A DNA stretch of 34,359 nt, taken from assembly GCF_006345805.1 (NCBI RefSeq), contig NW_021831727.1, positions 1 through 34,359 of the forward strand, given 5' to 3'. Both the position numbers and the translations under genes were made by a program. The notes beneath the pieces are model-generated. The model ran no database searches. It saw only the letters and a program-made list of their open reading frames with translations, and had not been told where the DNA came from. The stretch is from Octopus sinensis (Eukaryota). This document shows positions 4,729 through 34,359 of this stretch, one piece after another (the stretch's first letter is position 1; each line of letters starts with the position of its first letter).

Positions 4729-4758
4729 CAGAAATCGACTTAGGAAAATAATCATATA

Positions 4759-7237
4759 ATGGTTATTATCTAGATTAATAGATAGACTATACTCCTTCTA
4801 TTCCTCTCACTGTCCACGGCAACGGACCTCTCTGTCTACGAAGAAACACCCGTGGGGACATTCATTGGCAACTACTGTCTTCTCTCAAAGATTTCATGCA
4901 GATCGTACAACTCCCTCAGTTTCGACAAAAACATGTTATCTATTGACTTATCGGGGGATATTAAGGTTGTCATTTCTGAAGACTCACTGCTTAGGTGACA
5001 CAGAGAATTGACTCCGATAGCATCCCGGGAAGAATCATCAACATCAACCTCACTCTCAAAAAAGTCTCATTGGCGACTATCTACGATATTATTAAACTGA
5101 AGGTCATTGACATTAACGACAATCCCCCAAAATTCCCGAGTGCTGGACGGACTATTATGCTTCCCTCAATTTGCCCAGGATTTATTCTCCACTTACCTAA
5201 GGCTGAGGACAGAGACTTGGGGATCAACGCCATTCAACGGTATGAGCTGTTGGGAAAAGGACCTTTCTCACTCACGGAAAATAGGTCGTCCCCAGTCCTC
5301 ATATCTCACTCAGCCAACGCTCAAAAGTCGGTCAAACTGCGACTATTAGTATTTGACGATCAAAAAATCGTTTTTTGGTCATTTATGGACGTTTTTATAA
5401 CCTTTGGCGACTCCTACATAGCCACGACTCAGTTCTACGACGTGGTCCTCAGTCACTCGGCCAATAAAGGGACCCCAATACTCAATGTAGGGCCCACTAA
5501 GGACTACATACAGCACGTGTACAAATTAGAGGGGAACAAATACTCTATTGACACATATGGAACAATAATAAAGAATGATGATGAAAAAATAATCAAAGAC
5601 CAGCTAAATGTGTTAGTGGATAACACAAGAGGGCAAATTACGTCCTATCAAGTGCAGATTGAGACTGTTGAACGAAAAAACTTGTCATTAAAATGGACTA
5701 ATCAGAAAAGCAAGATTTTCAACGTGCTAAGGAACACTTCCTTTATTGCTCAGTTGTGTGTAAGCTGTCATGAAAATGATTTAAACGTGGAATGCAAAAC
5801 CAATACAAAAAGTGTCGTTCTGGTAAGAGTTAAAAGCAACGTGTTTAATCTAACTCTCGTGGATTATTCAAATGTCATTCCCAAAATATTTGTGTACGTG
5901 TATTGCACGTGGGTTGAGAATATCACAAGATATAGTACATGGTACCCACATGAGGAAACGTCGAAAGACATTGTTCAAGTTTGAATTATTTTATTCAAAT
6001 AGATATTTCCCAAAGATGACCAAGTACCTCAATTATTGGGAATTTATGAAGACATGCCTTTAGACACCGTTGCCTTGTTGGGAGTGGATAATGCGTTTGA
6101 AATAGAATTAAATGACTACTTTAATTGCCATCAAGTGTTTCGCAAAGACAATAAAGTTGGGTGCTTCGAAGTCGGCTCGCGGAAAATTTTCGACAGGGAA
6201 AAACTGGACAACCTCACTATAGGTTTTCTCTTTTGGAACGAAACGATCAATCCTTTGACAATCAGAATACTGGACTTGAATGAATATCCCCCCGTCTTCA
6301 GAAATAAAAACTGTGCCATTTCGATCAAGTTGGATACTCCGTCGGGACTTGAGTTGGCGAGAGTGTTGGCAGAAGATGAGGACATAGGACCCGACAGGGA
6401 GATATGGTATAGAATGATGTCTGTGGAGAATATGAGTGATTACAGCAATAGCCACGGCATGTTCTCCATTGATTTGAGTACTGGAAGACTGAGAACAAGC
6501 AAAAAAATAAACAGGACGGGGTATTTCCTCGTGAACCTCCGAGCTTCTGACTCAGGACCCCAGAATTGTTTGCGGATTTACACTGTCTCGTCCAAGTCGT
6601 TGATCTTTCTTCCGTTTTTGTGTATTCCTACAAAGGAAGTGTACTGGGACTATCCTCGACCATCGAATCGTCGAACATTCAAGTGGGAGATGTTTTCCTA
6701 CAAAATTCACGTTTCACATATGACTTCACTTTTTTTGTCGTTAATGACACGAATGGACATTTCCGATGTGACCCCGATTCTGGGAATGTGACTTTGGTTA
6801 AGCAAATGTCTCCCGGCGACTATTTGAAGTTGACCATCAAAGCTGTTTTCCGTCCCAATCCTTCCTTGTGGACGCTGTACTCCGTAGATTTGTTCTTACG
6901 GAATCCAATAGTGAGCGGATTGAGTGCCACTTTCGTGTCAGTTCCTGTCGTAGTTCTAATAATTTGTGTCGGGTTTGTGTGCTTGGGAGTCTATCTGTAT
7001 CGAAAGCACAGATCACCTCGAAAAATAGAGGTGAAATTTACATCTACCCTATAGCGACACACCGAGTAATTATAACTAATTATTTTTGTTATGTATAATT
7101 TATGGATTTGTAGTCCGATTATAACAGCGGTATTTGCAGGTGAGAATATCCAAAGTCGTGCTGAAAAATTGCAGGACTTTGACACATCAATCATTAATGT
7201 TGCCACTTCAAGTGTTAGTGTTAATTCTCGCTTCTAA
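4759..7237 (+). CDS. Protocadherin-like type I membrane protein (signal peptide, cadherin repeats, TM helix, short tail)
   Basis: Introns 4762-4785, 4966-4994, 5979-6002, and probably 7031-7054 and 7066-7113. Signal peptide MTILLLFLSLSTA. Cadherin motifs VYEETPVGTFIGN, DINDNPPKF, AEDRDLG, DLNEYPPVF, AEDEDIG. TM segment VSVPVVVLIICVGFVCLGVYLY. One missing base near 6556 links SDSG(T)PELF. Confidence 0.85.
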
Positions 7238-8112
7238 GTAAGAATTAACGTTTTTCGCGAACTTCTGTTTTAGAGAGCTATATGTCGACAACAAAGAAAT
7301 ACTATACTTTTTCGACGTTTAAGCTCGGAAAACCCTATATGTTTGACATAAAATTGGTTTCAGAACGACGAATCAAGAAATATAAAATAAATGACAAATC
7401 GGCAAAATATAAAAATGTCATAATTGAATGTCAGATAGTCAAAATGTAATGTAGTATTGTTAAAATTGATATAAAAAATGTAAGAATTGAATACCACATT
7501 ATCAACATTGCATATCGCGTTGTCAAATCTGATGTAAAAATGTCAAAATTGTATTCATTGAATGTTAAAAATATATCATAAATCACTTTGTTATATTTAT
7601 TTTTTAATCAAAAAACAGCTAATGAAAACACAATTAAATTGATCAAAGAAATATTTTTGCGGTCTATAACCGGCCTTAAGTTATTTTTAACCAAATTGTG
7701 AATTTTCCATTTTTAAACAAATCGAGCCCCAGTTCAATTCGGACATTACTAGCAAAATTGATTTACTCTTTTCGAAAATTATTACTTAGAATATTAGGAT
7801 AGAAGTATTTTTCATCAAAATTTCGTATGAATATATTTTGCGGTATTCTCTCAGGTCGGTTTAGATTATCGAAATTTCAGAAACACAATCTCCTTGCAAA
7901 TTAATTGTCGATTCTCTATGAAACAGAAATAAATATTGTTATCGCAGTCTTTATTTCAGATATCTGGACAATCATTGAGACATCCCCTCTGGTATTTACA
8001 CTGTTTATAAGCTACTAGGTAGAATTGTGTTTTAATTAAAATTATCTTAATTTTTAGTTACCCAATTATTAATAGAAAACATAATAAATTGTGGCACGTG
8101 TGAGTACTCTTT

Positions 8113-8640: not shown

Positions 8641-8957
8641 GAAGTTATCAAAGTTTAAAACGTCAATATTTACATAAAATAAATTAATGAGGTCAAAAAT
8701 TTATTCAACTTTCTCTGATCGTGTAAATATCAGAATTATATGCTAATATCAATACGCCAAATATAAAAAAATATTAAAAAAGAAATTTTTATTAGGGCGA
8801 ACTAAGTTAAAAAAGTTAAAATTTAATAATAGTAAATAAATAATAATTTAAATGATTTTTTAACTATATTTTATTATAAATAAATGCATATTAAACAATA
8901 TTATTAGGTTAAAAAGTTAAAATTAAAATTATAAGGTTAAAATTATATGATTCTTGA

Positions 8958-9801
8958 GGATTGTGGTTATTTTGGTTCAAAGGGAATATTTTTTTGTTAA
9001 TTTCGGATGCCGCAAATTATATGAAATCAGGTAAAATTTCATTTTTAAGTTTTAGCTGGCAAAATACTTAAAAATCTGTACCCCAAGTTATTCCATGTCA
9101 CATGTACTGTTCATCTATTACACAATTGTTGTGAGAAAATAAAAACCTCCTATCCGGAAATTGATTTGATGATTGCTACTGTACAAGCAGCCATTAACAA
9201 GAACAATACAAGAAAACGAATATTTAAAGACAGAAACATCGCCATTCCACCTCGTGTGCATTTGATAAGATGGGGGAGTTGGCTTAAGGCCGCTACTTAC
9301 TATTCAGAAAATCTGATCGGAGTACAAAATATTTTCGAATCATTCGCGGATGATGGATATCTAGTTCGAACAGCCAAAGAAAGTCTTCGAAACCATGTGT
9401 TAGTGAGCAGTCTATGTGACCTTATCCGAAGCTATTCAAACATTCCAGGTTTTCGAGTAAATGTCGCTATTGCAGATATTATTACAAAATTTGAAAGTAC
9501 GCGCTTCACAATTGAACAGGCATATTATTGTTTAGAATCGTTGGAATTTGGGAATGACAACAAATTTATCAAAGAATACATAAATAAAAGGCTTAAAACA
9601 AACGATATTTCGAACATAACTAGAATGACTAATTCACAAATATCTCCTGCCGAGTATGCATTACTTCTGAATTGTCAGCCAACCTCGTGCTCGGTTGAAA
9701 GAACTTTCTCTCTAATAAAGAGTTTTCTAAGATCCAACCGAAATTTTCTACAAGAAAATGTAGAAAATTATGTAATTTGTATGTGCAACAAACAGTTTTA
9801 G
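8958..9801 (+). pseudogene. hAT-like DDE transposase, C-terminal portion, with a 25-nt intron
   Basis: LLISDAANYMKS|AGKILKNLYPKLFHVTCTVHLLH (CxxH motif), IRWGSWL and PTSCSVERTFS. The frame is open only when GT-AG 9031-9055 is removed. Confidence 0.8.
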
Positions 9802-9816
9802 TGTTTTTATTGTTTA

Positions 9817-10301
9817 CTAGCTCGGCAGCTCGCTTCGCTCACCGCGACCTAGCTCCTGCGGAGGGCCTGTTTCATCAAACAACTATAAGTTTATGTAGAT
9901 GTATAAAACTAGCTGGTTTAATGTAACCCTATTCTATCGCCTGTTGATAAACGATGTTTGTCGTCCGTCCTTCCTTGGCATATATGAATAAATTTTCTTT
10001 CTGCCTACCCTCGAGCATCCCACATACAGCTGTCCATGTGAAAAGCACTCACTCTCTAAAATAACCCAACTACCTTTAATGACTGTCCCTGGGCCTTGTT
10101 TATTGTCATTGCAAACTTTTTTTTTCATTTTTTGTGTTTATTTTTTTTTTATATTTAATTTTTTCATTTTTCCTTTGTAATTTCCTTTTTTTTCTTTTTT
10201 TATTTTTTGTTTTTACTGGCGGAAATGGGGCAGGGGAGATGCGGCAGGCGGAAATGCGGCAGGCAAGAAAGCGACACACAAAAAAGCGACACACAAAAAG
10301 A
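9817..10301 (-). mobile_element. Non-autonomous Helitron, copy 2 (485 bp)
   Basis: Minus strand runs A|TC (10301) to hairpin and CTAG|T (9817): canonical Helitron termini with an AT target. Carries the same PIF1 C-terminal fragment as copy 1. Confidence 0.9.
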
Positions 10302-10492
10302 TTTAATTAATTACCTTATTAAGCTGACCGTTTTTCTTCAGCTTCGTTTTTCCTCCTTCGGTTATCTATTTAAAAAATTATTTTTGAATAATAAAAAGTT
10401 TAGGAAAAGAGGCATACCGAAAATAAATTCTATCTTTACGAAAAACTCAAGTAAATAGTTAATATTTTTACGCAAATTCTTCTGATTGCGCT

Positions 10493-10696
10493 GTCAATTG
10501 GTGGTAAATTGTGTTAATGGTTGTGCTAATGTGGTTTCAACTATCAAAGTGTTTTTCAAAATCTGTAATTGCACACTCTATTCAAGGTCGTGCGTCAATT
10601 GGTGGTAATTTGTGTTAATGATTGTGCTAATGTGGTTTCAACTATCAAAGTGGTTTTTCAAAATCTGTTAATTGCACACTCTATTCAAAGTCGTGC
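10493..10696. repeat. Direct repeat of about 101 bp, two copies plus a partial third
   Basis: gtcaattggtggtaa...ctattcaa(g/a)gtcgtgc at 10493-10593 and 10594-10696 with few differences; partial degenerate copy to about 10730. Confidence 0.9.
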
Positions 10697-10899
10697 AATC
10701 TGTGATTGCACATTCTGTCAAAGTCAAATATGATAATAGCTTTAATTTTGATTCATGGTCGATAATGATATATGCATTTAATTTTAAGAGAAAACATAGG
10801 ATCAATTGAATTTCTTTATCGCGAATAATTGGGAGTTCATCATTGTTAATATTCTCGCTGTCGTTTTCATCAAGGATATTCTTAATACGTGAGATTTTT

Positions 10900-12530
10900 G
10901 CCTTGAAGGTTTTAATGGACCTCATCATGAATGTCGAGGACATTCGCGTTGTTCATTTTAATCAAAATGCAGAAAATAATTTTTTGATTTTTGGGGGAAA
11001 GGTTTTAAGGACTTCATCATGTAAGTCGAGGACATTGTAGTTGTTCATTTTAACCAAAATGCAGAAAATTTTTTTTTAATTTTTTTGGGGGGGAAGGTTT
11101 TAAGGACTTCATCATGTAAGTCGAGGACATTGTAGTTGTTCATTTTAACCAAAATGCAGAAAATTTTTTAATTTTTTTGGGGGGGAAGGTTTTAAGGACT
11201 TCATCATGTAAGTCGAGGACATTGTAGTTGTTCATTTAACCAAAATGCAGAAATTTTTGTTTTAATTTTTTGGGGGGGAAGGTTTTAAGGACTTCATCAT
11301 GTAAGTCGAGGACATTGTAGTTGTTCATTTTAACCAAAATGCAGAAAATTTTTTTTTAATTTTTTTGGGGGGGAAGGTTTTAAGGACTTCATCATGTAAG
11401 TCGAGGACATTGTAGTTGTTCATTTTAACCAAAATGCAGAAAATTTTTTTTTAATTTTTTGGGGGGGAAGGTTTTAAGGACTTCATCATGTAAGTCGAGG
11501 ACATTGTAGTTGTTCATTTTAACCAAAATGCAGAAAATTTTTTTAATTTTTTTTGGGGGGAAGGTTTTAAGGACTTCATCATGTAAGTCGAGGACATTGT
11601 AGTTGTTCATTTAACCAAAATGCAGAAAATTTTTTTTATTTTTTTTGGGGGGAAGGTTTTAAGGACTTCATCATGTAAGTCGAGGACATTGTAGTTGTTC
11701 ATTTTAACCAAAATGCAGAAATTTTTTTTAATTTTTTTGGGGGGGAAGGTTTTAAGGACTTCATCATGTAAGTCGAGGACATTGTAGTTGTTCATTTTAA
11801 CCAAATGCAGAAAATTTTTTTTTAATTTTTTGGGGGGGAAGGTTTTAAGGACTTCATCATGTAAGTCGAGGACATTGTAGTTGTTCATTTTAACCAAAAT
11901 GCAGAAAATTTTTTTTAATTTTTTTGGGGGGAAGGTTTTAAGGACTTCATCATGTAAGTCGAGGACATTGTAGTTGTTCATTTTAACCAAAATGCAGAAA
12001 ATTTTTTTTAATTTTTTTGGGGGGGAAGGTTTTAAGGACTTCATCATGTAAGTCGAGGACATTGTAGTTGTTAATTTTAACCAAAATGCAGAAAATTTTT
12101 TTTAATTTTTTTGGGGGGAAGGTTTTAAGGACTTCATCATGTAAGTCGAGGACATTGTAGTTGTTCATTTTAACCAAAATGCAGAAATTTTTTTTTTAAT
12201 TTTTTGGGGGGGAAGGTTTTAAGGACTTCATCATGTAAGTCGAGGACATTGTAGTTGTTCATTTTAACCAAAATGCAGAAAATTTTTTTTTAATTTTTTT
12301 TGGGGGGAAGGTTTTAAGGACTTCATCATGTAAGTCGAGGACATTGTAGTTGTTCATTTTAACCAAAATGCAGAAAATTTTTTTTTAATTTTTTGGGGGG
12401 GAAGGTTTTAAGGACTTCATCATGTAAGTCGAGGACATTGTAGTTGTTCATTTAACCAAAAGCAGAAAATTTTTTTTTAATTTTTTTGGGGGGAAGGTTT
12501 TAAGGACCTCATCATGTAAGTCGAGGACAT
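10900..12530. repeat. Tandem array of a ~93-bp unit, about 17.5 copies
   Basis: The anchor GAC(T/C)TCATCATG recurs 18 times from about 10918 to 12505 at 92-95 bp spacing. Internal differences are almost all T-, A- or G-run lengths. Confidence 0.97.
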
Positions 12531-12556
12531 CGTATTGCCAATTTGAAGTGGGTGTG

Positions 12557-12592
12557 CACACACAGACAGACAGACAGACAGACAGACACACA
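12557..12592 (+). repeat. (CA)/(CAGA)n microsatellite
   Basis: cacacacagacagacagacagacagacagacacaca, about 25 bp inside the Helitron-like 5' end at 12614. Confidence 0.9.
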
Positions 12593-12744
12593 CCATACCA
12601 TTTTATTATTAAGATTTATAAAGTTAAATTTTTGGGTTAATTTTTTTAGTTTTTAGGTTAATAAAGTTAAAGTTTTTAGGTTAAAATTTTTATTTTTCAG
12701 GTTAAAAAAAATCGCCCTAGTCATTATATAGCCTAAAATAATAG

Positions 12745-14986
12745 CCTTCTACGAACAGTGAGAATCCTGACCAAAAAAGCAAGAACGTAAAAGGTAAAAG
12801 ATACCAAAGGCACTATAAACATTAACTAATAATAGCCGATGGTTCCATGAATTACGGGACGAACTAGAAAGAACTCCTACAAGTAAAAAACTACTTATTT
12901 CATGACCAACAGCCCCAATTTTCACGACCAATACACCAAAGACCGAAAAAATGAAAAGCTCTAACCCAAATAAGCAAATTTAAAAAAATTAGTCGAAGAA
13001 TCTCAAGAAGCAGGCACCGAACAATTTCAAGGGTTTGACAAAGAAAATTTCGATTCAATCCCCTACAAGTATTTAAAATTAATTATTTAAGTAATTTGGA
13101 TTGGAATGATTCATCCAAGGACTGTTTTGTCGAAGGAACTGGTATTTATATATTTGTATGTTAGAAATGATTCTCCAACCATGTTACTACTGCAAAAAAA
13201 TTAAAGAAATGGTATTTTGACATTTTTTGTTAAAAATAGGTCCCGCCGTTGAAGTTGGGAAGACACAGTGACACAACTTTGGCACTTATGTTTTATTTGA
13301 ACACTCAAAATGAACTCCATTTGAATACAAGCATAGAATTGTAGTTTAGAGCTGTCAAAGTTGTTTAGATTTCGTAGGAATTGGAGATACAGTCAACCCT
13401 CTCTATAGTGAACCCTCTCTATAGTGAACAGGCCATATTAATGCAATCTACAATAACAAATATTAGTAATTCTCATTAATATATTTATTATAAAATGAAT
13501 ACCACGTTTAAAAATGTATAATATCATTTATTTCAATATTTTTGTGTTCACTATTAAAGAATAGTGAACGTCAAATTTTTGTGAACATAAAAATATTAAA
13601 TTTAATATTTTTACATATTAAAATGAATAAACTACACGTTCTACAGTTGTTAGCATGGTGGAAAATCGAAAACGCCTGTCATTTTTTCAAAAGAAGGAAA
13701 TAATCGAATTTTATCATAAAAATAGACATTACACACAGCGCGATTTATCTCTTTATTTTAATGTTTCTCTGGGCTGCATAAACAAAATTTTGAAAAATTC
13801 TGAAGGAATACTTAATGTTCAAGATGACCAAAAAAAGAAGAAAATTTACTTGCCCAAGTCTCAACCATTCGACAGAGATCTATTTGAATGGTTCGTTAAA
13901 AAATGATCATTTGGATTTACAATCAATGAATATCTTTTGAAGTCCATGTCTCTAAAAATGGCGAATTAATAATTTACAAGTGGAATACAAATCAAATAAA
14001 AAAGCATGGATGACATATTTCTCAGAATGGCTCATAGAATTGAACAAAAAAATGATTTTGCAAAAAAGAAAAATTCTAATTCTACTTGATAATGTGACTG
14101 TACACTCACGTGATTTAGAGTTCAGTAACATCGAACTCTTTTTTTTCCCTCCAAAACAACATCGAAGTTACAACCCCTTGATTAAGGAATAATAAAATCA
14201 TTCAAAGACAGGTATAGACAACTCCTATGTGCACACTTGATTGAATTTTATACTAATGATGACAATGTAGATCACGAAAAAGTTACGGAAAAGTTGAAGA
14301 AATTCACTCTATTGAATTGCTTGATATTCATAAATGAAGCTTGGTTAGAAGTGTCGGAATTAACAATTACAAATTATTTCAAGAAAGCATTTGAAAATGC
14401 GTTAATACAGAACCTGACAGAGTTCCGACACTATATGAAGCTAGTGAATATGCGAAGGCGCTTGAATTATGGTTTCTTGAGAATGATTATGAACAAAGAG
14501 GAAAAGTATACAAAATACAAAAAATTTTAAGAAATTATCAAACTAATCATTCTCAAAAAATCACCGATTACATGATTAAAATCTCTAAATAATCTTTGTA
14601 ATTATACTTTAATATTGTTTATTGTTATTTTGATTCCTTTTGTTCACTATAGACAATAGTGAACATGATGTTTTGACGTGGACATTTTGTTCATTATAGA
14701 GAGGGTTGACTGTACCACAAACCCAGCAAGTTTGGATAACCGGGACAAGCACAAAGACACAGGAATTGATCGCCAATAAACCGACAGAGTCGTTTACAGA
14801 AACATTTACTTACATAAATCCTAGTGAAATGAAAAAAGTATATTTTTGTGAAAAATTGTTTAGTTTAAAAAGGAATTTTTTATTAATTCGGAGACTTTGG
14901 AGTATATAATCTATTCGGATTTGTTGAAAGATAAGGGACCAACTGATGTTCATGAGGCAACTTCGGCCGCATTTAAACAATTTTAA
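12745..14986 (+). pseudogene. CNOT2: CCR4-NOT subunit 2 (NOT-box) gene, interrupted by a pogo/Tigger insertion; 5' end not found
   Basis: Introns 12794-12835, 12883-12912, 13069-13091, 13142-13164, 13212-13239, 13341-13368 and 14838-14863. With 13390-14714 removed the product reads PLKLGRHSDTTLALMFYLN...ELFRRNWRYHK(T)QQVWIT...KKFKKEFFINSETLE, matching the NOT2 domain (IKLGRY..DLLFYLYYMN...ELFNRDWRYHKEERVWIT...RKVAKEFHLEYDKLE). Three single-base homopolymer losses are needed (about 12778, 12980, 14720). Confidence 0.85.
13390..14712 (+). mobile_element. pogo/Tigger DNA transposon, both TIRs and TA target duplication intact, transposase defective
   Basis: TA|CAGTCAACCCTCTCTATAGTGAAC ... GTTCATTATAGAGAGGGTTGACTG|TA: 24-bp TIRs with one mismatch. 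ORF pieces 13655-14530 give an HTH, then KKAWMT, KILILLDNVTVH and IELFFFPP (DDE_1). Confidence 0.95.
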
Positions 14987-15244
14987 AAAATAATTTAGCT
15001 TTGAGTTTTTTTTTTTTGGCTGTAGATTAATTTTGTTTTTGTTCATTTTTTATCGTGATGTTAAGTAACAGTAATAATAATTTAGCATTTAACTATGCCT
15101 CTTTTTTATTTTGTTTTCTATTAAGTTATTAAGTATTAGACTAAATCGATTGTAAAAAATTGGTTCTTGGAACCTTCATTTAATCCTGTTCAGTTTATCT
15201 GGTGAACTAGCATTTTGTTACATTTGTTTATTAGGCTACACCCC

Positions 15245-15680
15245 CTCTCTTGTCACCTCAGTGCCGGCCGAATACCCAGACATGCGCCTTGAATGATATT
15301 GTCAAGCGTGCGCTCTACGCCGCTGGATTCCCTTCGGTCCTGGAGCCGGTTGGGTTAGACCGTGGTGACGGAAAACGTCCCGATGGGTCCACGCTATTCC
15401 CGTTCAAGGGGGAACTCGCTCTCGTTTGGGACGTCACCTGTGTCGACCCGTTTTCCTCGTCATCTCTCATCGACTCTGCCTTCCGCCCTGCTCAGCCTCT
15501 GCAAATGCCGAAACAAAAAAAATCACAAAGTATGCCTCATTGAAGAACACCTGCCTTTTCGTCCCTCTGGCTTTCGAGACGAGTGGGATAATCGGCTCAA
15601 AACCCCTGGAGTTCCTTTTGGAGACCGGCTTGATGATCTCAAGGAACTGCCTGTCTATTCGCTCGTTTTCTCAATCAAAG
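15245..15680 (+). mobile_element. CRE-like non-LTR retrotransposon 3' fragment (REL endonuclease)
   Basis: LNDIVKRAL...[16 protein letters not shown]...WDVTCVD...KITKY...FVPLAFETSG, with frameshifts. Confidence 0.85.
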
Positions 15681-15761
15681 AATTAACGCTACTTACTTGG
15701 CTAGCATCTAATTTTGTTTTTGAACTTTCTTTTAAAGGTAAAAATATTTGTTTATTCAAGG

Positions 15762-16025
15762 AGGATTCAACTGTTCTCAGTCTCAAGTTTCAAGGATTTT
15801 GAAGAATAAAGAAGAAATTATGTTATTGGCTGAATCAAATTGCACCAATTTGAGTCGCAAAAGATGACGCCATGGCAAAGAAAAGAACGTAGAAACTGCT
15901 TTGTCCGTCTGGTTTGGTCAAACCAGGGGGGAAATGTGCCAATTAATGGTCACATATTAACCCACAAAAGCTACTAGCTTTGCTAAAACTATGAAAATGG
16001 ATGACTTTATTCCCACTTCAGCCAT
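15762..16025 (+). pseudogene. pogo/Tigger transposase N-terminal fragment
   Basis: FNCSQSQVSRILKNKEEI (HTH_psq-type) and VETALSVWF...VPINGHIL...KATSFA (CENP-B-type HTH). Confidence 0.7.
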
Positions 16026-16108
16026 GTGATATAGGGATCATAAAAAGTCTAAAGCACAAGTACAGATTGACATTTTTACAGAGAGTGATTGTCATAATTG
16101 ATTCAGAC

Positions 16109-16935: not shown

Positions 16936-16959
16936 ATGGCCATAAAGATTTTTCGAAAA

Positions 16960-19078: not shown

Positions 19079-19099
19079 TAAATTTCATTTTTGTAACCT

Positions 19100-22164: not shown

Positions 22165-22199
22165 TTATGGTTTGATATTAATTGAGTTCTTTTATATTA

Positions 22200-25100
22200 T
22201 TTTTATATTTTGTTATTTATTAAACCAATGTTTAATAAAAAATTAATTATGTAAATTCTATCTTAAATTATTTAAGAATCCAGATCGTCAGTGATTTCTC
22301 TTCTTCGCTTGGAAGAAGAGTTTGCAACAAAATTCTCATCATTTTCCATTTCTGCGTCAAAGTAATTGTTCAACTGAGTGTCCTCACGACATGCCAGCTC
22401 TGCAAGTTGATTGGCGGCAGAGGCGTACTCCTCGTTGTCTACCTTCATCCCATGTCTGTGTTCAATAAGCATACTCTCTAGAGTCCTCTTCAGCACAACC
22501 GACTGGATGTATGTCCTCGTTCCTTCTTCAATGGATAATTTGTCCATATGACTTTTAAAGAACTTTGAGACAACTCCATCCCATGTCAAGACAATTGGAA
22601 TAATCTTCACTTTTGCTTCATAGAGAAACGACAGTTCGTTTGCAAGCAGGTCATATTTGTGAAATTTCTCCACTTCAACTTGCTTTAAACGGTCTTGCGA
22701 GGTAACTCCCACTTCGATTAAATGAATTTCTCTTTTCCTCTTGTCATAAACGAAGATATCAGGTTTATTGAATTGAACCTTTGTTTCAGTCATAATTGAA
22801 GTGTCAACTCTGATTTCGACATTTTGGGTCGACATTGTTGACACGACTGAATGTCCTTTCAATTTCCTGCTTCGTTTTATTCCATACATTCGACACAAGT
22901 GGAGATGAATACACTTTACCACTTCGTTGTGTCTTCGGAGATAATCACTGTTTAGCATCCTACCACACCGCGTGGCTAGATGGTCAACAGTCTGCCTGCT
23001 TTTTTTGCAGTGGACGCATAGTGATCCCGTGTATGCAAAGAACAAATTCCTATCTTGCAAAAGACAGTACAATGCTTCGCTTCGTGGACCATTGTTCCCT
23101 TTCGATAGCCATTGCGAAGAAGTAGATATGTCGACATCTGATTCCTCCATACATTTGAACATCACCGAGTGTAGTGATTTACTGTTAATTCGGTTAAGCA
23201 AGAGTTTCCTTTGTGCGTCCTTCAGTAACTCAATGGTCAGATTTTCCCTGCCGACAGCTGCATATTTGGAGACAAGAAATTCTGCGATTGTGGCTAAGTG
23301 CCATTTTTTTCCTTTTATTACTCGCAGAATACCCGACCTCCGCAGACAGGTAGTCGACTGTTTTTCCAAACTTTTAAGAAACTGGAAGAGCATTAATTCG
23401 CTTTTGAAAGAAATTGAGGCAAGTCCTCTTCCAAGGGTCTTGCGGTCCAAATACAACCTCTCCTTATTTGCAGGCTGGAGGTGTAACTTGAGAGTCGTAA
23501 GTAATCGGCGTATTTGTTGGTCAATCTCATCAAATTCGTAAGGTTCAATATTGATTAGCCCAATATAATAATTATATAGGGATAATGCATATTCATTGAT
23601 TCCACGAAACAAATTTACAGCATTCAGGTTTGTTTTTGACAACATAGTTATCCTCTTCTTGACATTCTCCAATATGGAGTCCATAACTTTATTCTTGAGA
23701 ACATTACTTCCGCCATCTTCAAGTACACCCAAGTAGCGATATCCGTTGATTCCATCGACAGTCTCACAGCATGATAAAGATTCCACATTAGATGCTGATT
23801 TTTCGGAATTCATCTCTAGGCCGACACTTTCAAAAAATCCATTAACAGCCTCCATCATTTTGACTAACACATCTTCTTTGAGGGCAACTATTTTCAGATC
23901 GTCAATAAAGAAGAAATGATGGTGGAGTATGTCAACATATGGAATCTTCCCGACTAATTTCGAGTTTGGGAAACATGGAGTTAAGCATCCTGCTTAGGGG
24001 ATCCATCGCCATAACGAATAGCAGCGGGGACAATGAATCTCCTTGGAGTATTCCCCGGCTTAACTTTACTTTCCCAATTCTTTTCCCATCGATATGTAAG
24101 TTTACTGTCCACTTCTTGACTATGTTCTTTACAAAGCTGACAATCCAATGTGGTATTCCAGAGCAATCCAATACGTGGAACAAGAACTCGTGATCAACTG
24201 AGTCAAATGCCTTCTTCACATCGACCCAAGCAGAATAAAGGCCATTTCCATACTCCTTATTTAAGCATTGGTTAATGAGGGCTTGCTCTTTGGCGCCTTG
24301 ACATTGCTTCCTCGTCCCAAGCTGATTATCTGAGATTAAGCCAAATGCTCGATGAAATCGATGAAATCGGCCAGTTTGGCATTAACACATTTGGTGACAA
24401 GTTTATACAAAGTTGGCATACACGTTATAGGGCGTAAGTCCTTCGGGGTCTCACACTCACTTTTTTAGGGATCAAGTAAGTTACGCCAGTGTAAAACCAG
24501 CTATCAGGCGTGTACTCTCCATTAATTATTCGGACTATCTCTTTACACAGAAACCCATGCAAAGAATCCATCTTCTTTAAGAAAAAGTTATACGTTCCGT
24601 CGCATCCGCATGCCTTCCAGTCAGGTGCATATTTGAGCATATCCATAATAAAATCACTTGTGAATTGAGGTCGCATGGTTTCACCGCCAGTACACCTCAC
24701 ACCCACAAAATCATAAACTACGGGCCCCATATTTTTCTTGCTCCAGACATCTTCCCAAAATGATAAGCACTCACCATCACCAAACCCATACAGGGTGGCT
24801 TCGTTGCTCGAAGATAAGTTTCGATAAAATCTTCTGCGGTTTAATTCAAAACACGCATTGTCTTTCCGGAAATTTTTCCTCGAGGAATGGATAGATATCT
24901 GTTTCTTTTTGATTCTAATTAGATCATTCAATAGAGTCTCAATTCTGGTTAGCTCCCCCTTCTTAGACTTCTTATATCCGTAGCGGCAGAGAACATCCAT
25001 TGCCTTTTGCTTTTCTGCCTGAGGCAAGGTTTGTTTGGAGAAAGAACGAACTGTGTCAATTTCATCTGCTAATTTAGAGATTTTTCTTTCCGTGTTTTCC

Positions 25101-25800
25101 AACCATGTGCTCTGTGGTCTGGCTCTCGTAGTTAAGGCCAAATAAGCACACTGTGCAGCATATAGAATATCGGTAATTTGATTAATATCTTGGGGCGGAT
25201 CATCTTTTGTAATATGATAAATTGCAGAATTAATCCAGCCAGGAGGATATCAGTTTTTTACCATCCTTCGTTGCACCTTTGGAGTTGGCTTTCGAGAGTC
25301 TCTCTGAATAGACTGAACTTTCCCAATTTGGAATTTGAGTTCCTCTAGGCAATTTCTGAAACTGGAAATTTCTACGTCCACATCATCTTGCACTCTGGAA
25401 GAGTCGCATCTCCCTTGCACATTGTTATTCCGTCTAGCCATGCTCTTTAGTTGGCATAAACTAGAGCACTTTGCCGAGTACTTCTCATTGAACTTCTCCA
25501 GGACAAGGTTCCAACCACCTCTTGGCATCCTTCCAAGTCTTTGCTTCGCGGCAAGGGCAATCTGAGACACCCATTCGCCTTCAGAGACACCATTGACATT
25601 TCCGATGATCGCAGAAAGAGAATGCAAGTTAGTTTTGGCAGCATCACCAACAAGATCTTCTTTAACACCATTAGCTCTTGTGGCATTGTGAGGTCCCATA
25701 GGCGACGGTCCTGTCTTTTTAAGTTCTTTTTATTTGCAGGAAGGCCCGTAGGTTTCGTTTTCCTTAACTGCTTGGAAACGTACATGCACACACCACAACA
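22200..25800 (-). mobile_element. Near full-length RLE-type non-LTR retrotransposon (RT, CCHC, REL endonuclease)
   Basis: RT motifs WVDVKKAFD, GILQGDSLSPLLF, FIDD and YLG; CVHCKKSRQTVDHLATRC; RHNEVV; KPDIFVYD...LIEVGVT. The ORF is split by roughly five frameshifts. AT-rich 3' UTR containing AATAAA. Confidence 0.92.
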
Positions 25801-26299
25801 ACTTTATTTATTAAATAAATTAATCATTATTTAAAGCTAATAATATTTCATACTATCTACAATTTTCATACTATCTACAACTTGAAGCTTTTAATTCCCG
25901 CACTTGAAGCTTTTAATTAATTAACTTGTAGTTATTGGTTGGTTTTCCTTTAATAAATTAACATTCTACAACTTTATTTTCATAAATAAACTACTCTTAT
26001 AAAAATTTTAAGTAATCTTATTCATTGTTTATCGAGTTATTTACAATTAAGTAATATTCTACATTATCCGCTTTAAAATTTACATCTTTAGTTAAGATTC
26101 TGTTAAGAATAAAAATAATCGTTCCACTTCGTACGATGTAGCCTGACATTTAATCAACAAAGAATAATCTATAGACGTAAAATAACATAGAATAATTAAC
26201 TTTATTGTTCTATCTCTGGCTTGTGAAAATTGTTTAGCACAAGCGAAAATTTTGTCACCTAGTTGTTGTAGATGGTTCTTCCGAGTTCATCATTAAGTT

Positions 26300-27140
26300 T
26301 TAGTTTTTCTGATTTTTCTGTCGCGCTGGTATTTTTACAGCTGATACGTTTGCGCTTCCTGCATGTAGCCTTTTTAAACGAACTCTCTCTGGATCTACCG
26401 GCCGACGACCTGCAGGAATTTCGGACCATAGTCAACCTCCAATTCCTTCTGAGATGTCCAGACAGAGGATTTAGGACGAGATCTGGGCAGCACACTCCTT
26501 TTCCATGCTACAGCCGCTACTGGATTAACATCGCCTGGCGTGCTTGCTTTCTGCAGTTCACAAACACAGTGACTCCTGACTCGACGTCTCCCAGACGCCA
26601 TCAACGGGCTAGTTATTGGATGACGAGAATCTCCGAATTCGAGTTGCTCTTCGGTTGGGTATTGATAGCTGTACGCCCCGTTGTTGCCGATGGGAAGGTA
26701 TGGTGAATGTGGAAGCTCCCGAGAACAGGCCGCACGCCTCGTCACGGGGCACTCAACGACGTCATCTCGTGAGCACTCAATGTTGCCGGTTTCTTGAATT
26801 TACTCGAACTAGCCGGTCTGGACAGGGGGGACGGCAAGCCTCTAAATAGGATGGCAACCTTTTTTCCGTAATGGCAAATGCCACATCTGGGATGCTACGA
26901 ATACAATTTAGTCCCCATCCGCATCTTCTCCTGGATCGGCTGCGGTTTTGGCGAAGTCAACATAACGGAAAAGTGCAATCAAATTGCCCCTCAACATTTC
27001 TCTGTCCCTCCGATATTCGAAACCTCCGGAGCCTTCGGCTTGCAAAAATCAAAATTTCTGAAAAACGTCTCCCACATTATCGCTCGAGGATGTTCTCTGG
27101 CAATGCTGCAGATCGAGTTTGTTTTTTTCTCACTATCTTC
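26300..27140 (+). mobile_element. Degenerate CRE-like retrotransposon 3' fragment
   Basis: HRLACLL, LDDENLRIRVALRLG, GLDRGDG(K) and FETSGAFG, with many stops and frameshifts. Confidence 0.75.
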
Positions 27141-27163
27141 TCTCATTCAATATAAAAGGTTAG

Positions 27164-27607
27164 ATGTTAGTCAGCTCAACGACACCCCAATGCGTATTGA
27201 ATGGCAGTTTCTGCGGAGCACAGCAACCGAGATTCGCGAAAGTGCCAGCTCGTATTTCTCCAGTCGTCTGTTTTCGAGGAGATTTTCCTAACATTGTCAG
27301 TGAGGAGTTGAGTCACAGCCTTTCGAATATTCCTGAGGTTTTGATAACAAGGACTGAAGACGGATCCAAAAAAGTCCTCCCGGAACTTACTGCTTCAGTG
27401 CTGAGATCGCCCAAGCAGTTTCCCGCAGAGATTCGACAATTTTTAAAAACGATTAACTATAAACAATTATTTTTCTTCATCGGCTTGGAACGAAAATTAC
27501 AAGGGAAAATAAGGATCCCAACCAGACTTATCATCTTTTTCAAAAAGTCTCGTCAGCGATCTTCCGAGAAAACTGCAACCCATCTTGTACGGAAGAGTTC
27601 AAAATAA
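27164..27607 (+). other. Unassigned ORF-bearing island between two LINE remnants
   Basis: A 147-codon open frame on the plus strand and a competing spliced reading on the minus strand. No family recognised. Confidence 0.2.
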
Positions 27608-27899
27608 TTCTTTTCTATGTTTAAATTCAAAATCAAAAAATAAATTCTCCGAAAAAAATTAAAATGTAAAGAGTGATATTTTAAAAAAGAACAACATGTT
27701 CTCCAGTCAACGGGAACAATCTTCTTAACGTTCTAAAGCGAACGCCAAGTCACGTTCAGGCAATGCAGAGTAAAGAACATCATTACAGTTTTGTCTAAGA
27801 ACATTTTTGATAAACGTTCTCTCTTAGAAATGATCCTGAAAGTATAGCCTTACTTCCAATAAATAGGAAGATAAAGATGAGATAGGTTTATTTTCACAA

Positions 27900-30450
27900 A
27901 GAGAATACTTGATATAAAATTAAAGAAAAGTAGCAGGCCTTATACACTAAGTCGTTCATGGCTATTTCCTTCTCTTGTCTAGAAACTTTAGGAACTGGCT
28001 TTCGACAAGTCACCAATTTCGTGACAGCTCATAAAAAGGTTTTGTGACAGCTCGGTATTTTTTCTCTCAAATTTACGCTAAAGGCCACCTTGAGAGCTAA
28101 TCTCCTCGTTTTTCCAGTAGTTTTATAATTCTTGCCTTAGAAAGGGACAAGATCCGCCCTTCCAGCCCAGACATCACCACAGAAAGAATGACTACCCGGA
28201 AAATAAATAGCACAGTCTCCGGGGTAGTTTGATTAGGTCCATAATCATTTGTGTAAACATTTCATTAAAAAAATTAGACTTCCAGGTACAAAAACGATTA
28301 GCTCTTCCGAATAGATTCAATCGTATATGGTAAGGTTTTTGCACTTCTTGCTTATACTTTAGTGAGCGTGCACTTCTCAATTAACAGAGTCAAGTACTTC
28401 AATACCATCCACTGTTTTATTTGCTTTAAGTAGATTTTAGTTTTATTTCCGACGTCGTCGGAAGGGCTGCCTCGTTCGTGATAATAACGTCATCAGCATA
28501 AAGGAATACATTCGTTGAGATGCACACAGGTTTTTGGAAAGTCTGCCATGTACACGATGAACAAAAATGGGGTGAGAACTGAGCCTTGAGGTACTTCCTT
28601 TTTTGAAGAATAACTTTTGAATCTTAACCAAGATATTTGACAAAGGAGATCCTCCCATTCAAAAAACTCGCTAACTATCAAGGGTTTCTGCATCGACATC
28701 ACAATATTCAAGATTTTCCAGCAAGATTGAGTGACAGACACTGTCGAAAACCTTCGACACATCCAAGCAGACAATACTGTTCGATAAGCCAGAATCTCGT
28801 GCCTTAGATACTATCGAATTCAGTCGATAGATGAAGTCAGCAAGGTTCGGCCCGGACGAAAACCCCACTGATCGTGAGAGAGCCAGTGATTCTATATGCA
28901 ATACTAGACTTCTATATATGATTTTCTCCATTATCTTTGATGTAGATCAAATTAGACTTATAGGCCTATAGTCCAAGGCTTTTTTAAATTTCTTAGGTTT
29001 TCGAATTATTCGAACTTAGGTTTTTTCCATGATGTTAGAACGGAGGCTGGAATTGTAGAGTTTTGTAAGCACAGACATCAAACAAATCAGTGCATGCTTA
29101 ATACAGGCCATTGGAATCTTGTCATATACTGGGGCCGCATTTTTGACTACGCTTATTACTTCTCGAGTCTCAGACTCAATAATCGTGTAACGTTGCAATC
29201 TGCGTGTGTAGTTTGCTGGAGGACGCTTTGGTAAAAAGGCAGATGGATCTGCTTCCGAAACAGCTGCGAGCTGATTGCGGAGGATTTCAGTAATCTCCTC
29301 TTGGATCGAGAGGCATCCTCTCAGACGTCATTAATGTTGAATACAGCATTATAGTCATCATCTTGGAAGTATGATCACCGCCGATGTTTTCGATTTTCCT
29401 CGTAGGTTTGCATAAGAGCTTCAATGAGGGTGAAGTTAGGAACAGCCGTAAGAAATCATCTCCATGACATGAAAAATAATTTGGCTCTTCCGATGTTTAA
29501 ACATCAAAACCAACATGATCGGATATAGCTCGCAGGCTTTTTTTCTACTGAAGATGGGCATTTAGAATTTAGATTTCCAGCAATTAGTGAAAATTGATTT
29601 TCTTTAAAGAAATCAGCAATTAAGTTTTTGTTTTCAGCTAATTTCTTATAGTAAATTCCCCCAAGCAGAACCCATTCCTGTCTACATTAAAACTCGAGAG
29701 ACAAAAATTTAAAAATAGTTTCGTTTTCTATTCTCAAGTTTTCCATCTTTAACCAATTCATATAGAAGATGACCGTGCCAGCAACTGGACACCATATGAA
29801 GTATAGCCATCCAAGGTATATCATTCCATGTTTTTATTTTGACTCGTTTACTACTAAAATATCCGGCTGATGGAAAGCCACGAGCCGGATTAGCTCGGAA
29901 GGCCGTCTCCATATTGATCTGACATTTAGGAGGATGACCACAAGAGAGCCTTTTACGCCACCATCTCTCGTAAATATCGATCTTTTTCGTTAGAGATCAC
30001 ATCGTTCTATCCCAATTAAATGATTTCCCCCTCAATTGATTTAAGTCACCTGTCTATCGACATATTGAGTTCCTTTTTAAGGATGACTTCTTTTTGAGAC
30101 CCCTGCCTTTCGTTGTTTTTTGTTCCGGAATTAATTTTGAGACTTCTGCTGCTTCCAGATCTATAGTCATTATATTTGAGTCCGTAGGCTCATCCGTTTG
30201 GGTTCCAATGGATACACTGCTTTTAAAGACTTCTGTTTACAGACGATTCTTCCAAAAATGGAGTCACAGTTTGCTGTTTCTTCCAAGCTGAGGTCATACT
30301 TGGGGCTTTCTTAGAGATCATATACAATCCAAAATCAGAAGGTAGATTGGCTTCCGTGTTTGATGGTACTCAGAGACGAAAGTTTTTAAGGTCCATTTGG
30401 GAGTTATTAGTTTCCACATGAGATCTGAACTCGATTGATGTTATAAAGTT
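27900..30450 (-). mobile_element. Degenerate APE-type LINE (ORF1 remnant, RT)
   Basis: VCLDVSKVFDSVCHSILL, EVPQGSVLTPFLF, VKNAAPVYDKIP and the thumb region KTRRLALKVAF; decayed zinc-knuckle-like sequence near 29780; many stops. Confidence 0.75.
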
Positions 30451-31105: not shown

Positions 31106-31354
31106 TCAATCTTGGGACACCAAGTGTATCATTATTTCTCCTATAAGAAAAATTTTGCTGTCAGTAGGATATAACTTGTCCCTTTAAAAAATCCATTACT
31201 ATTTTTCAAAATAATTAAAAAATTGAGTCTTTTAGCTAAAAAGTGTCCGGATTTTTACGTCACTAAAAACACGTTTTACGCCTTTAACTATTGTTTTTAA
31301 AAACTTTTGAAAATATATTTTTTTTAATACAAAAAATATAGGAACAAATATTAA

Positions 31355-31855
31355 TTTATCCAGCGGTAGATCACTTGGTATTGTGCGTCAAAGCACTTGT
31401 TGTCAAAAAGAATTTACGACGTCAATTATTTACAGAAATTGGATATTCACCCGAGCCCATTGTAACTAGATGGGGCAGCTGGTCAAATGCTGCTGACTTG
31501 CAAAAAATTTAACAGAAATCTTCAAGAAGAGGATTTTTTTATTAAAAATATTGAATCAAATAAATTCACTATTTCAAGAGCGTATCATTTTTGAAAAATA
31601 CTGATTTTAAAGAAGATTCCTGTAAAATTCAAGACTACATAAGCTTACAAATTTCAAGAAACGACATTTTAGAAACAATGGAGTTATCTAAGCTACCAAT
31701 TACTTCATTTCGTCACGCATTATTGTCCGGCAACATCGTGCAAAGTAAAAAGGTCATTTTCTATTATTCATAAAATTTTAACCAAATATTGCAATTTCCT
31801 ACCTGAAAATGTTAAATATTATTTAATGTTGTGCTTTGATAAATTAATTTCTGTT
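31355..31855 (+). pseudogene. Second, more decayed copy of the hAT-like transposase family seen at 8958-9801
   Basis: YPAVDHLVLCVKA...PEPIVTRWGSW and NFLPENVKYYL parallel YPEIDLMIATVQA...IRWGSW and NFLQENVENYV. Confidence 0.7.
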
Positions 31856-32179
31856 TCTTGAAACTTTTAATTTTTTAATGCAATTTAGTCGACTTTTAAG
31901 ATCATTTTTTTAATATTTTTGAGAGCAACTCTCCGGTTGCCCTAATTACAACATGACTGCTCACCGAGAGGTGTTATAGTTACTTAGTAAATATCAATTA
32001 AGCATCGTGTAGAACTAAAAGATTATTTCACTTCTCATCGTAATCTGTGAAAATATTAAATTGGGCTTTTTTTAAAAATAACTTGGTTAAATATTTTAAT
32101 TAGATTTATAATGGAAAAAATTGATTGATAATTATTTTAGAGCTAATATGTATTCACATTTAAAAAGCACTTCGTTTTA

Positions 32180-34359
32180 TTTTTTAGATGGAGATTTCCT
32201 AAAATATATAAATTAGATTGATACTTTTTTTTAGCTGAAGTAGATTTTGTACTTATTTTAGCTATTGATTACTTACCACGAACATCTAACCTTTATTTGT
32301 AGAAACTGGGGTAGCATTCGGGCGTTCCACATTCTAAACATAAACCAGAGGCCCATACATCTTCAAGTTCTAGTTCTTCGTTTTCTTTCGTAAGATCATC
32401 GAGATCCTCGTCCGTTATTATGCCAAAAGATTTGCTCTATGAAATAAAAAACAAACGCTACGTGCACATTCGATATATCGTAGCAATCAATTTCTTTAAT
32501 TATCTATAAAGTTTTATTTGTCCTAATACTTTTATCCACTCATTCAAGACCTCACTATCCTGCTCTGTGATCGCAGCGTGTCTCAGTGATATTTTCAATT
32601 TTTTCAACTCGTCGATGTCTTGTGGTTTTATGCACCGGCGACATTGCATGATGACCGAACAGAGACTCAGTCGCACAATGGGGACGGGGTCATTGATCAT
32701 GTCAATCAGATGAGAGACAAAGTGAATTTTGTTGAACCTCCTGGAATTTAGTTCAAACGAGTTTTTTGCAACATCAATGAATATAATCCGAAAATAACAA
32801 TTTTGATTGAAACAGAATTCTAAATGTCAAATAAGCCACTAAAAACCATTGAATATTTTTTGCAGAAATTCCTGTTGTTTCTGCTTTGGCTTTGTATACC
32901 GAATAATCATAATAATCAGCGAAACATACGAATCAATGACCGGTAATGGAAGCTATGATATAAACAAAAATTTTTAAGTCACCGAGCTTTTAAGATGTCT
33001 CCAAATAGAGGGAACAAATTTTTGGTAAATTACGTTCGATGGAAGTAATTTCCAACACTTTTTAAACTGTTCGACAAATTTTACGTGAAGATGCCATTCG
33101 TATGTATTAATCAAAAGGGCCTCTATTTCTTGAAAGATTTTTATAAATTCGTTGATATACTCACACTAGTGGATTATTAGAAAGAAGTACGGTTATATTT
33201 TTACTTTCCTTGTGCCCTTTTGGGATATTTAAGAACAAAGTGACTATTTCACCCAGATTGGGAATTATCTCACAAATAACCTAATCATGTTGCTAAAAAA
33301 AACCTCAAGTTTGACATTTTTACATAGCTCTACAAATTGAGGCTGGACACAGTAAACACTCAAACCCAAACCCAACATGATCTATCATCTTTATTCAGAA
33401 CTAAATAACCTCCAAAAAAGTTTTTGCGACTGTTTTTTTAAGTTCAAGTTCAGAATCTTTCACGAGCGTTTTAAGACAGATGTGGAGATGTGAATGGAAT
33501 AAAGCAACCCCTGCAATTTGTAAAACTTTCTAAGCAAAAAACAAATCCAGTTATACTCCAAAATTCATTGCAAAGCCCAGTTTGCAGTTAAGGTTCAGCG
33601 ATTTTGAAATTTTTAGAAGAAATATTTCCTATAATAAATAAAAAATAGAACATCATTTTTATCATCGAGAAAACAAAGGTTGGCAAAATACTCAACGAAC
33701 CAACGCATTTGATGGTCAGTGATGTCTCCTGAGACATGACATTTAATTCTCATCAAACGTTTAAAATTGTCGAGGAATAATGAAAACTGTCGAGCAATCA
33801 CTTGAAGTGTGTCTTCGCATTTGTTGTAAGATTCTTGGAACAGTTTTATAATCATGGAAATGTATCCTTTCTTGACTTCTGACAAACTTAATGAGGAGAT
33901 GTCGGTACATTACCGGTGTCTAGAATCGGCAAGATGCAAGCCAACGTTTCCACTGCAGCCGATTTGACAATAATAGAATCGTCTTTCAACAATTCCAGGA
34001 GTTCTGGAACTATTGACATGGCTGTGTTCTGGCCTCCAATTCTACTCTAATAGCACATTTTATGTACCGCGATATGTGACGTAATTCTCCACACATTGCA
34101 GCTCGTACGTCGTAGTCAATATCTTGACATAGATCTTTGACTAGACGAAACATTTTTTCAACCATCCTAAGATTTGAAAACATACATGACACGTCTTGTT
34201 TCTAATTTTATTTAACATAGGAGTGATTAGTCGACAACTGAGAATCCTACTTCCCACTGACTTGGAAATAATTGCATTTTGTATTGAAAGAGGCATTATT
34301 TGGCACATCACAGTGTCTTGGGTCAAATAAGGAGTCACTCGAATTAGTCCTTCAAACCA
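32180..34359 (-). CDS. PPP4R4: Ser/Thr protein phosphatase 4 regulatory subunit 4 (HEAT repeats); 5' end beyond the window, 3' end approximate
   Basis: WFEGLIRVTPYL...SVGSRILSCRL, LVKDLCQDIDYDVRAAMC, VPELLELLKDDS and MINDPVPIVRLSLC match the segment order of PPP4R4. More than ten mini-introns, for example 34167-34192 and 34042-34067 (26 nt each). Confidence 0.85.

Follow-up and report, generated by a model that had tools for sequence, protein, structure and literature searches.

Introduction

The literature describes two groups of animals with introns as short as those reported here, the dicyemids and the myxobolid myxozoans (PMC2222250, PMC6543705, PMC13644364). This analysis concerns a 34,359-nucleotide (nt) stretch of DNA, referred to as the window, in which five conserved genes between positions 4759 and 34359 encode a protocadherin-like protein, CNOT2, a PRUNE-like phosphoesterase, HOGA1 and PPP4R4. 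Their coding sequences are interrupted by 30 GT-AG introns whose median length is 25 nt. The window most likely derives from a Dicyema species inhabiting the renal sacs of Octopus sinensis, either D. japonicum or a close relative.

Dicyemid mini-introns are already known, having been described since 2007-2010 and surveyed again in 2026. In seven Dicyema genes the introns measure 26.2 ± 1.9 nt (Aruga et al. 2007, PMC2222250), and Dicyema sp. shows a median of 27 nt, two thirds of its introns being shorter than 30 nt (Zverkov et al. 2019, PMC6543705). The genome of D. japonicum, sequenced from its host O. sinensis, has a mean intron length of 38 nt, a guanine-cytosine (GC) content of 36.7% and a repeat content of 48.9% (Lu et al. 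2019, PMC6736024; GenBank RDEW00000000), and its splice motifs are reduced to about 'GTa...AG' (PMC13644364). An initial annotation of the window had stated that introns this short are reported for dicyemids, and the published figures bear this out.

Three further systems invite comparison. In myxobolids the median intron measures 22-27 bp and the splice motifs are reduced (Hadjez et al. 2026, PMC13644364); myxozoan genomes are relatively poor in transposons, and that of H. salminicola is 29% GC (PMC13644364). The orthonectid Intoshia linei has a median intron of 57 nt, the majority being longer than 30 nt (PMC6543705). Introns of the ciliate Paramecium span 20-35 nt with a mean of 24.8 (quoted in PMC2222250).

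Very short introns in five conserved genes

Rebuilding the five genes calls for the removal of 30 segments, every one of which begins with GT and ends with AG (30/30) and restores the reading frame when taken out (Table 1). Their boundaries, their sizes and the recovery of conserved proteins upon removal are direct observations. The shortest measures 20 and the longest 35 nt; the median is 25, the mean 25.6 and the standard deviation 2.9 nt (n = 30). Of the 30, 29 lie between 20 and 30 nt, and 24 between 23 and 28 nt. The initial annotation had proposed five conserved genes in 4759-34359 with about 30 GT-AG introns, mostly of 20-30 nt, and both claims hold for the rebuilt genes, whose frames align to homologues after removal. 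Its figure of 35-48 nt for the longest introns stands at the lower end, with one intron of 35 nt verified, and lacks confirmation above it, where none of 36-48 nt was verified. The present analysis adds the identity of the fifth gene, a PRUNE-like DHH/DHHA2 gene, and a rival source that had been overlooked, the myxobolid myxozoans.

Most of these introns are anchored by homology. Twenty-two of the 30 fall in stretches where the spliced protein aligns continuously to homologues (HOGA1 5, PPP4R4 11, CNOT2 3, PRUNE-like 2, protocadherin-like 1), while the remaining eight are based on the joining of open frames or on weak similarity. In HOGA1 and PPP4R4 together, 17 of 18 introns either shift the frame or carry a stop in frame, and the exception is a 30-nt in-frame intron that coincides with a 10-residue gap in the alignment. 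A dynamic programme that joins frames automatically was rejected as the basis for counting: chance GT...AG pairs in transposons and antisense DNA cause it to over-extend gene models, and therefore only junctions with homology support or clear frame joins were counted. With that programme, the difference in intron length between genes and decoys was not significant (Fisher P = 0.18). At the rate of 0.47 with which decoys fall between 20 and 30 nt, at least 23 of 24 introns would do so with a probability of 4e-7.

Splice signals are reduced to a minimum. In the 29 tabulated introns, the third position is held by A 14 times, by T 10 times and by G 5 times but never by C, and an extended 5' consensus is absent; the base preceding the 3' AG is T in 19 (TAG) and C in 6 (CAG). 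The introns have a GC content of 28%, compared with 47% for the exons of HOGA1 and 37% for those of PPP4R4. We infer from the continuous alignments of the spliced products that the 30 segments are removed by a U2-type spliceosome. The best explanation would be that they are GT-AG spliceosomal introns of the ordinary kind, reduced in length to a narrow class around 25 nt and retaining minimal splice signals.

Individual gene models

HOGA1 provides the clearest case. With its five segments removed, residues 23-310 of the product align to human HOGA1 (3s5o) with 214 bits. An unguided tblastn search with bacterial HOGA1 homologues passes through frames -1, -2, -3 and -1 in succession, and almost every switch comes with a surplus of 25 nt of DNA; a few overlapping pairs of high-scoring segments gave a surplus of 4 or 37 nt. 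The last intron was at one time modelled as a 16-nt GT...CA segment. That version was replaced by a canonical 26-nt intron together with a 1-nt frame bridge at the GGG run 21214-21216, which scores better for all 40 of 40 homologues. A word-indexed protein search with the spliced HOGA1 returned only bacterial-type matches of at most 47% identity and gave no taxonomic placement.

PPP4R4 carries the largest number of introns. Residues 1-505 of the spliced product form a single alignment stretch to animal PPP4R4 proteins, reaching 222 bits at no more than 31% identity, and residues 13-505 align to one fungal homologue; Pfam HEAT repeats were matched as well. Introns of this gene that have no remark in Table 1 are supported by this alignment of the spliced product to homologues. 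The stop falls at 32503-32505; use of the last two introns moves it to 32296-32298. A word-indexed protein search with the spliced PPP4R4 produced one fungal match and no close relative. Of the top 20 matches, 16 are named, and these are bilaterian (molluscs, arthropods and an echinoderm), with identities of 25-31%, except for one from the unicellular animal relative Pigoraptor. The 16 named include no cnidarian; the other four of the 20 clusters are nameless.

The protocadherin-like product has a Pfam Cadherin match of 48.8 bits, and its top matches among solved structures are protocadherins, at 100 bits. The initial annotation had taken this gene as the sign of an animal, a view with which both the structural matches and the named PPP4R4 matches agree. 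The frame requires a 1-nt bridge at the CCCC run 6558-6561, and the gene stops at 7052-7054, or at 7066-7068 with the last, optional intron used.

CNOT2 was first located by tblastn with a CNOT2 C-terminus as probe and was then confirmed independently by Pfam and by a search of solved structures. Once the gene is spliced and the flanks of the transposon within it are joined, the product matches Pfam NOT2_3_5_C with 35 bits (cut-off 27) over the stretch 43-153, and the top solved structure is human CNOT2 (E 2.8e-9, residues 55-155). The Pfam scan, which covered all single open frames of at least 38 aa, missed CNOT2; the domain is visible only after splicing and joining.

The PRUNE-like gene was modelled in its 3' half as a 176-aa spliced product that matches Pfam DHHA2 with 49 bits (cut-off 27) over the stretch 24-168. 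Upstream of a 25-nt micro-exon there is a possible 17-nt GT-AG intron at 18438-18454 (GTGGCACTTATCAATAG), for which a frame slip in an A run is the alternative. This segment stands outside the 30.

Table 1. Genes, introns and repeated elements of the window (positions are those of the whole stretch)
Feature	Positions	Strand	Basis or remark
HOGA1 (4-hydroxy-2-oxoglutarate aldolase) gene	21079-22164	-	complete, ATG to TAG
HOGA1 intron, 25 nt	21833-21857	-	tblastn frame switch with 25 nt surplus; within HOGA1 alignment
HOGA1 intron, 24 nt	21681-21704	-	in-frame stop; within alignment
HOGA1 intron, 24 nt	21522-21545	-	in-frame stop; within alignment
HOGA1 intron, 25 nt	21400-21424	-	frame switch with 25 nt surplus
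HOGA1 intron, 26 nt	21240-21265	-	outscores 16-nt GT..CA model for 40/40 homologues, mean +5.3 bits
PPP4R4 (protein phosphatase 4 regulatory subunit 4, HEAT repeats) gene	32296-34359	-	5' end beyond window
PPP4R4 intron, 26 nt	34167-34192	-	
PPP4R4 intron, 23 nt	34045-34067	-	
PPP4R4 intron, 35 nt	33879-33913	-	longest verified; 27-nt alternative hits a stop, 35-nt version fits alignment
PPP4R4 intron, 30 nt	33729-33758	-	in frame, stop-free; matches 10-residue gap against homologue P0121; removal gives one-stretch alignment
PPP4R4 intron, 23 nt	33629-33651	-	
PPP4R4 intron, 27 nt	33530-33556	-	
PPP4R4 intron, 28 nt	33382-33409	-	
PPP4R4 intron, 23 nt	33281-33303	-	
PPP4R4 intron, 25 nt	33166-33190	-	
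PPP4R4 intron, 30 nt	32953-32982	-	
PPP4R4 intron, 27 nt	32820-32846	-	
PPP4R4 possible intron, 26 nt	32504-32529	-	model only; past aligned part of protein
PPP4R4 possible intron, 22 nt	32435-32456	-	model only; past aligned part of protein
Protocadherin-like gene	4759-7068	+	signal peptide, cadherin repeats, one transmembrane helix
Protocadherin-like intron, 24 nt	4762-4785	+	right after ATG; removal gives a signal-peptide-like start; model only
Protocadherin-like intron, 29 nt	4966-4994	+	junction within alignment of residues 18-155 to protocadherin 6vg1
Protocadherin-like intron, 24 nt	5979-6002	+	in-frame TGA; links two long open frames
Protocadherin-like possible intron, 24 nt	7031-7054	+	optional; unspliced frame stops at TAG 7052-7054
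CNOT2 (NOT2/3/5 C-terminal domain) gene	12989-14986	+	conserved part modelled; transposon interrupts coding exon
CNOT2 intron, 23 nt	13069-13091	+	open-frame join; outside aligned stretch
CNOT2 intron, 23 nt	13142-13164	+	junction at edge of Pfam stretch 43-153
CNOT2 intron, 28 nt	13212-13239	+	within human CNOT2 alignment
CNOT2 intron, 28 nt	13341-13368	+	within human CNOT2 alignment
CNOT2 intron, 26 nt	14838-14863	+	within human CNOT2 alignment
Decayed pogo/Tigger-type DNA transposon in CNOT2 coding exon, 1.3 kb	13390-14712	+	24-nt terminal inverted repeats, TA each side
PRUNE-like DHH/DHHA2 phosphoesterase gene	17550-19078	+	3' half 18455-19078 modelled
PRUNE-like intron, 24 nt	18480-18503	+	in-frame TAA; open-frame join; model only
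PRUNE-like intron, 20 nt	18603-18622	+	within DHHA2 alignment
PRUNE-like intron, 25 nt	18724-18748	+	within DHHA2 alignment
LINE-type reverse transcriptase	~22272-25800	-	open frames and Pfam
LINE-type reverse transcriptase	~27700-30000	-	open frames and Pfam
Retroelement fragments	~15235-15800, 19299-20630, 26260-27610		open frames and Pfam
Pogo/Tigger elements	13390-14712 (the element in CNOT2) and ~15740-16110		open frames and Pfam
hAT fragments	~8860-9925, 16100-17500, 31300-31860		open frames and Pfam
Helitron-type helicase ends	1-243 and 9937-10137		open frames and Pfam
93-bp satellite	10905-12534		17.4 copies, 95% identity; 187-bp period also readable; between Helitron-type helicase fragment and CNOT2

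Links to Octopus sinensis scaffolds

The repeats of the window connect it to a particular set of database entries. The closest matches of the long interspersed nuclear element (LINE) open frame at 22275-23993 are 13 proteins labelled Octopus sinensis, with 57-77% amino-acid identity, and all 13 are located on small scaffolds of 40-509 kb. The genuine octopus PPP4R4 is found on scaffolds of 33-59 Mb and is 28% identical to the copy in the window.

Four of these small scaffolds, unplaced in the O. sinensis assembly GCA_006345805.1, were compared with the window: VCDQ01005537.1, VCDQ01011117.1, VCDQ01001009.1 and VCDQ01009738.1. They have several repeat families in common with the window, the top matches being 97% over 250 nt, 92% over 267 nt, 87% over 492 nt and 100% over 53 nt. 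Genes with mini-introns were demonstrated on two of the four. VCDQ01011117.1 carries a chitinase whose true introns measure 24, 32, 29 and 41 nt. The corresponding RefSeq entry, 'chitinase-3-like protein 1 [Octopus sinensis]' (10001-14781), fuses a transposon open frame to the GH18 chitinase and skips coding sequence, the true introns having been swapped for gaps of 44, 86 and 167 nt. VCDQ01001009.1 carries an HSDL2 homologue that reaches 148 bits to human HSDL2, with exons joined by GT-AG segments of 20-26 nt, and the gaps that persist in its alignment point to further in-frame mini-introns that may still await removal from the model. The four small scaffolds are probably dicyemid DNA annotated as octopus.

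Two other features of VCDQ01001009.1 were observed. A voltage-gated potassium channel with T1 and ion-transport domains occupies a single uninterrupted exon of 1171 nt (3922-5092), and the annotation merged it with the adjoining HSDL2 homologue (6723-8094) into a 418-aa product. The 53-nt match corresponds to 25895-25947 of the window, just upstream of the LINE, and is 100% identical to both 8987-9039 and 9916-9968 of the scaffold, where the two copies occur in inverted orientation, separated by about 0.9 kb. The segment probably represents the end of a mobile element common to both sequences.

Composition of the window

The window is eukaryotic and rich in transposons in character, as judged from open frames and Pfam scans, and its GC content over 34,359 nt is 36.1%. 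A tally of open frames and Pfam matches assigns about 16-17 kb of the 34 kb, or about half, to transposons and satellite. Within the 29.6-kb span 4759-34359, the five conserved genes take up about 8-9 kb, and the remainder consists of transposons and the 93-bp satellite. A tRNA scan and an Rfam scan of the window found no tRNA genes and no Rfam-listed RNA genes. Open frames of the window had no exact match in the contig collection.

Source of the DNA

Taken together, the intron, composition, repeat and octopus-scaffold results are best explained by a dicyemid belonging to the parasite community of O. sinensis, a reading to which a probability of about 0.85 may be given. The assignment is a strong inference and not an identification. 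The window would then be dicyemid nuclear DNA, in which genes with spliceosomal introns of about 25 nt are set in a repeat-rich genome of about 36% GC, and a contig labelled as cephalopod would in such a case be parasite DNA sequenced together with its host. The initial annotation had suggested a co-sequenced cephalopod parasite. That suggestion gains circumstantial support from the LINE matches, from the repeats common to the window and small O. sinensis scaffolds and from the mini-introns on two of the four scaffolds. The bilaterian PPP4R4 matches agree with a dicyemid source, as weak evidence.

The likeness to the described dicyemids extends over several properties. D. japonicum and the window share very short introns, a GC content of about 36-37%, a repeat content of about half with many LINE copies, and highly divergent proteins, and the assembly of the host of D. 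japonicum, O. sinensis, has scaffolds with repeats common to the window. The reduced splice motif, about GTa...AG, is likewise common to D. japonicum (PMC13644364) and the window introns. The two differ in mean intron length, for which the published 38 nt, inflated by a tail of longer introns, compares with 25.6 nt in the window (n = 30). For Dicyema sp. and D. acuticephalum the published median is 27 and the mean 26.2 ± 1.9 nt, against 25 and 25.6 ± 2.9 nt, respectively, in the window; none of the genes described in the papers concerned (PMC6543705, PMC2222250) is present in the window. Intoshia, a reduced spiralian parasite, also has short introns, but its median of 57 nt and its majority above 30 nt differ from the window median of 25, with 29 of 30 introns at or below 30 nt.

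Several points weigh against a dicyemid source. The protein collection holds no close relative of the window proteins, with identities of at most 47% for HOGA1 and 31% for PPP4R4, and best-hit taxonomy is a poor guide for proteins that evolve so fast. The link to octopus scaffolds rests on repeats, which can move between genomes. Finally, the 1-nt breaks in three genes and the transposon in an exon may mean that some copies are decaying or that the assembly is imperfect. The frame bridges, found in three of the five genes, all fall at short G or C runs (6558-6561, 21214-21216 and 14715-14716), which suggests that homopolymers were under-called in a long-read assembly; alternatively, the copies are decaying and the frameshifts real.

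The rival that survives best, though it is still improbable, is another animal associated with cephalopods, either one with mini-introns that is so far unsequenced or a lineage that resembles dicyemids and lies outside Dicyema. The evidence, which consists of intron size, base composition and the association with an octopus assembly, pins down no genus. All the measured figures, on the other hand, are close to published values for Dicyema (PMC2222250, PMC6543705, PMC6736024). To our knowledge, no animals with mini-introns other than dicyemids have been described from cephalopods.

A myxobolid myxozoan, one of a group of cnidarian parasites that includes Henneguya, Thelohanellus and Myxobolus, is a less probable source again. 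The resemblance is real: median introns of 22-27 nt against 25 in the window, reduced 5' splice motifs and a fast-evolving parasitic genome with fast-evolving proteins. A median of 25 nt does not by itself separate myxobolids from dicyemids. Other features argue against a myxobolid. Myxobolids are parasites of fish and annelids without a link to the octopus assembly, whereas the repeats of the window match small scaffolds of that assembly, two of them with demonstrated mini-introns. Myxozoans generally have fewer transposons, and H. salminicola has a GC content of 29%, in contrast to a window that is about half repeats and 36% GC. The absence of cnidarians from the named PPP4R4 matches in the top 20 also argues against this source.

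It is very unlikely that the short segments are chance GT...AG pairs or small insertions in decayed pseudogenes of an animal with normal introns. Two observations favour such a reading, namely that three genes require a 1-nt bridge and one carries a transposon in an exon, and that the frame-joining search yields many spurious GT...AG bridges in non-coding DNA. Yet all 30 segments are GT...AG and 20-35 nt long, they are located where the alignments to homologues break off and resume without loss of residues, a count of at least 23 of 24 at 20-30 nt has P = 4e-7 under the decoy rate, and unrelated genes on different scaffolds are built in the same way. Least probable of all is a ciliate or other protist with introns of about 25 nt, such as a Paramecium-like form or the cephalopod renal ciliate Chromidina, for although Paramecium introns match in range and mean, ciliate macronuclear genomes have reassigned stops in many lineages, few transposons and no animal-specific genes, whereas the window has exons delimited by all three standard stop codons, genes ending at TAG or TAA, a protocadherin-like gene, a PPP4R4 closest to animal proteins and an animal-type load of LINE elements and pogo and hAT transposons.

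A transposon within the CNOT2 gene

In the element that interrupts a conserved coding exon of CNOT2, the inverted repeats lie at 13390-13413 and 14689-14712, where none would be expected by chance, and they are flanked by TA at 13388-13389 and 14713-14714. Pfam HTH_Tnp_Tc5 and DDE_1 matches occur among the open frames of the first 14.8 kb, and the element's own frame is broken. Joining its flanks gives a product whose alignment to human CNOT2 runs through the junction, with one extra base still required at 14715-14716 (CC). The element was also considered as a long intron and rejected as such, there being no GT...AG pair at its ends that preserves the frame.

The structure recalls a phenomenon in ciliates, in which Paramecium removes TA-bounded, Tc1/mariner-derived internal eliminated sequences. 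Chromatin elimination and the formation of circular DNA have been reported for the somatic cells of dicyemids (PMC6543705), and for this reason the CNOT2 element could conceivably be a germline-limited sequence that is excised in the course of these processes, improbable as this is. If it were so, an animal would carry an essential gene that is interrupted in the germline and mended by DNA excision. Plain excision from TA to TA, however, does not restore the frame and leaves it one base short at 14715-14716. A recent insertion allele in a pooled parasite population, a dead copy of the gene or a mis-join is far more likely.

Significance

The practical value of these results lies in data hygiene. 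Parasite DNA can be flagged from raw sequence alone, and it can sit unrecognised in the assemblies of hosts. To go by the four scaffolds compared here, the public Octopus sinensis assembly holds scaffolds of several hundred kb from an organism with mini-introns, and their genes have been entered as octopus proteins whose exon structures are wrong. In such contigs, genes will be broken systematically by gene finders whose lower limit for intron length exceeds about 30 nt. Work on the gene families and transposons of cephalopods can be led astray by mislabelled scaffolds of this kind, which would at the same time be usable as additional dicyemid sequence.

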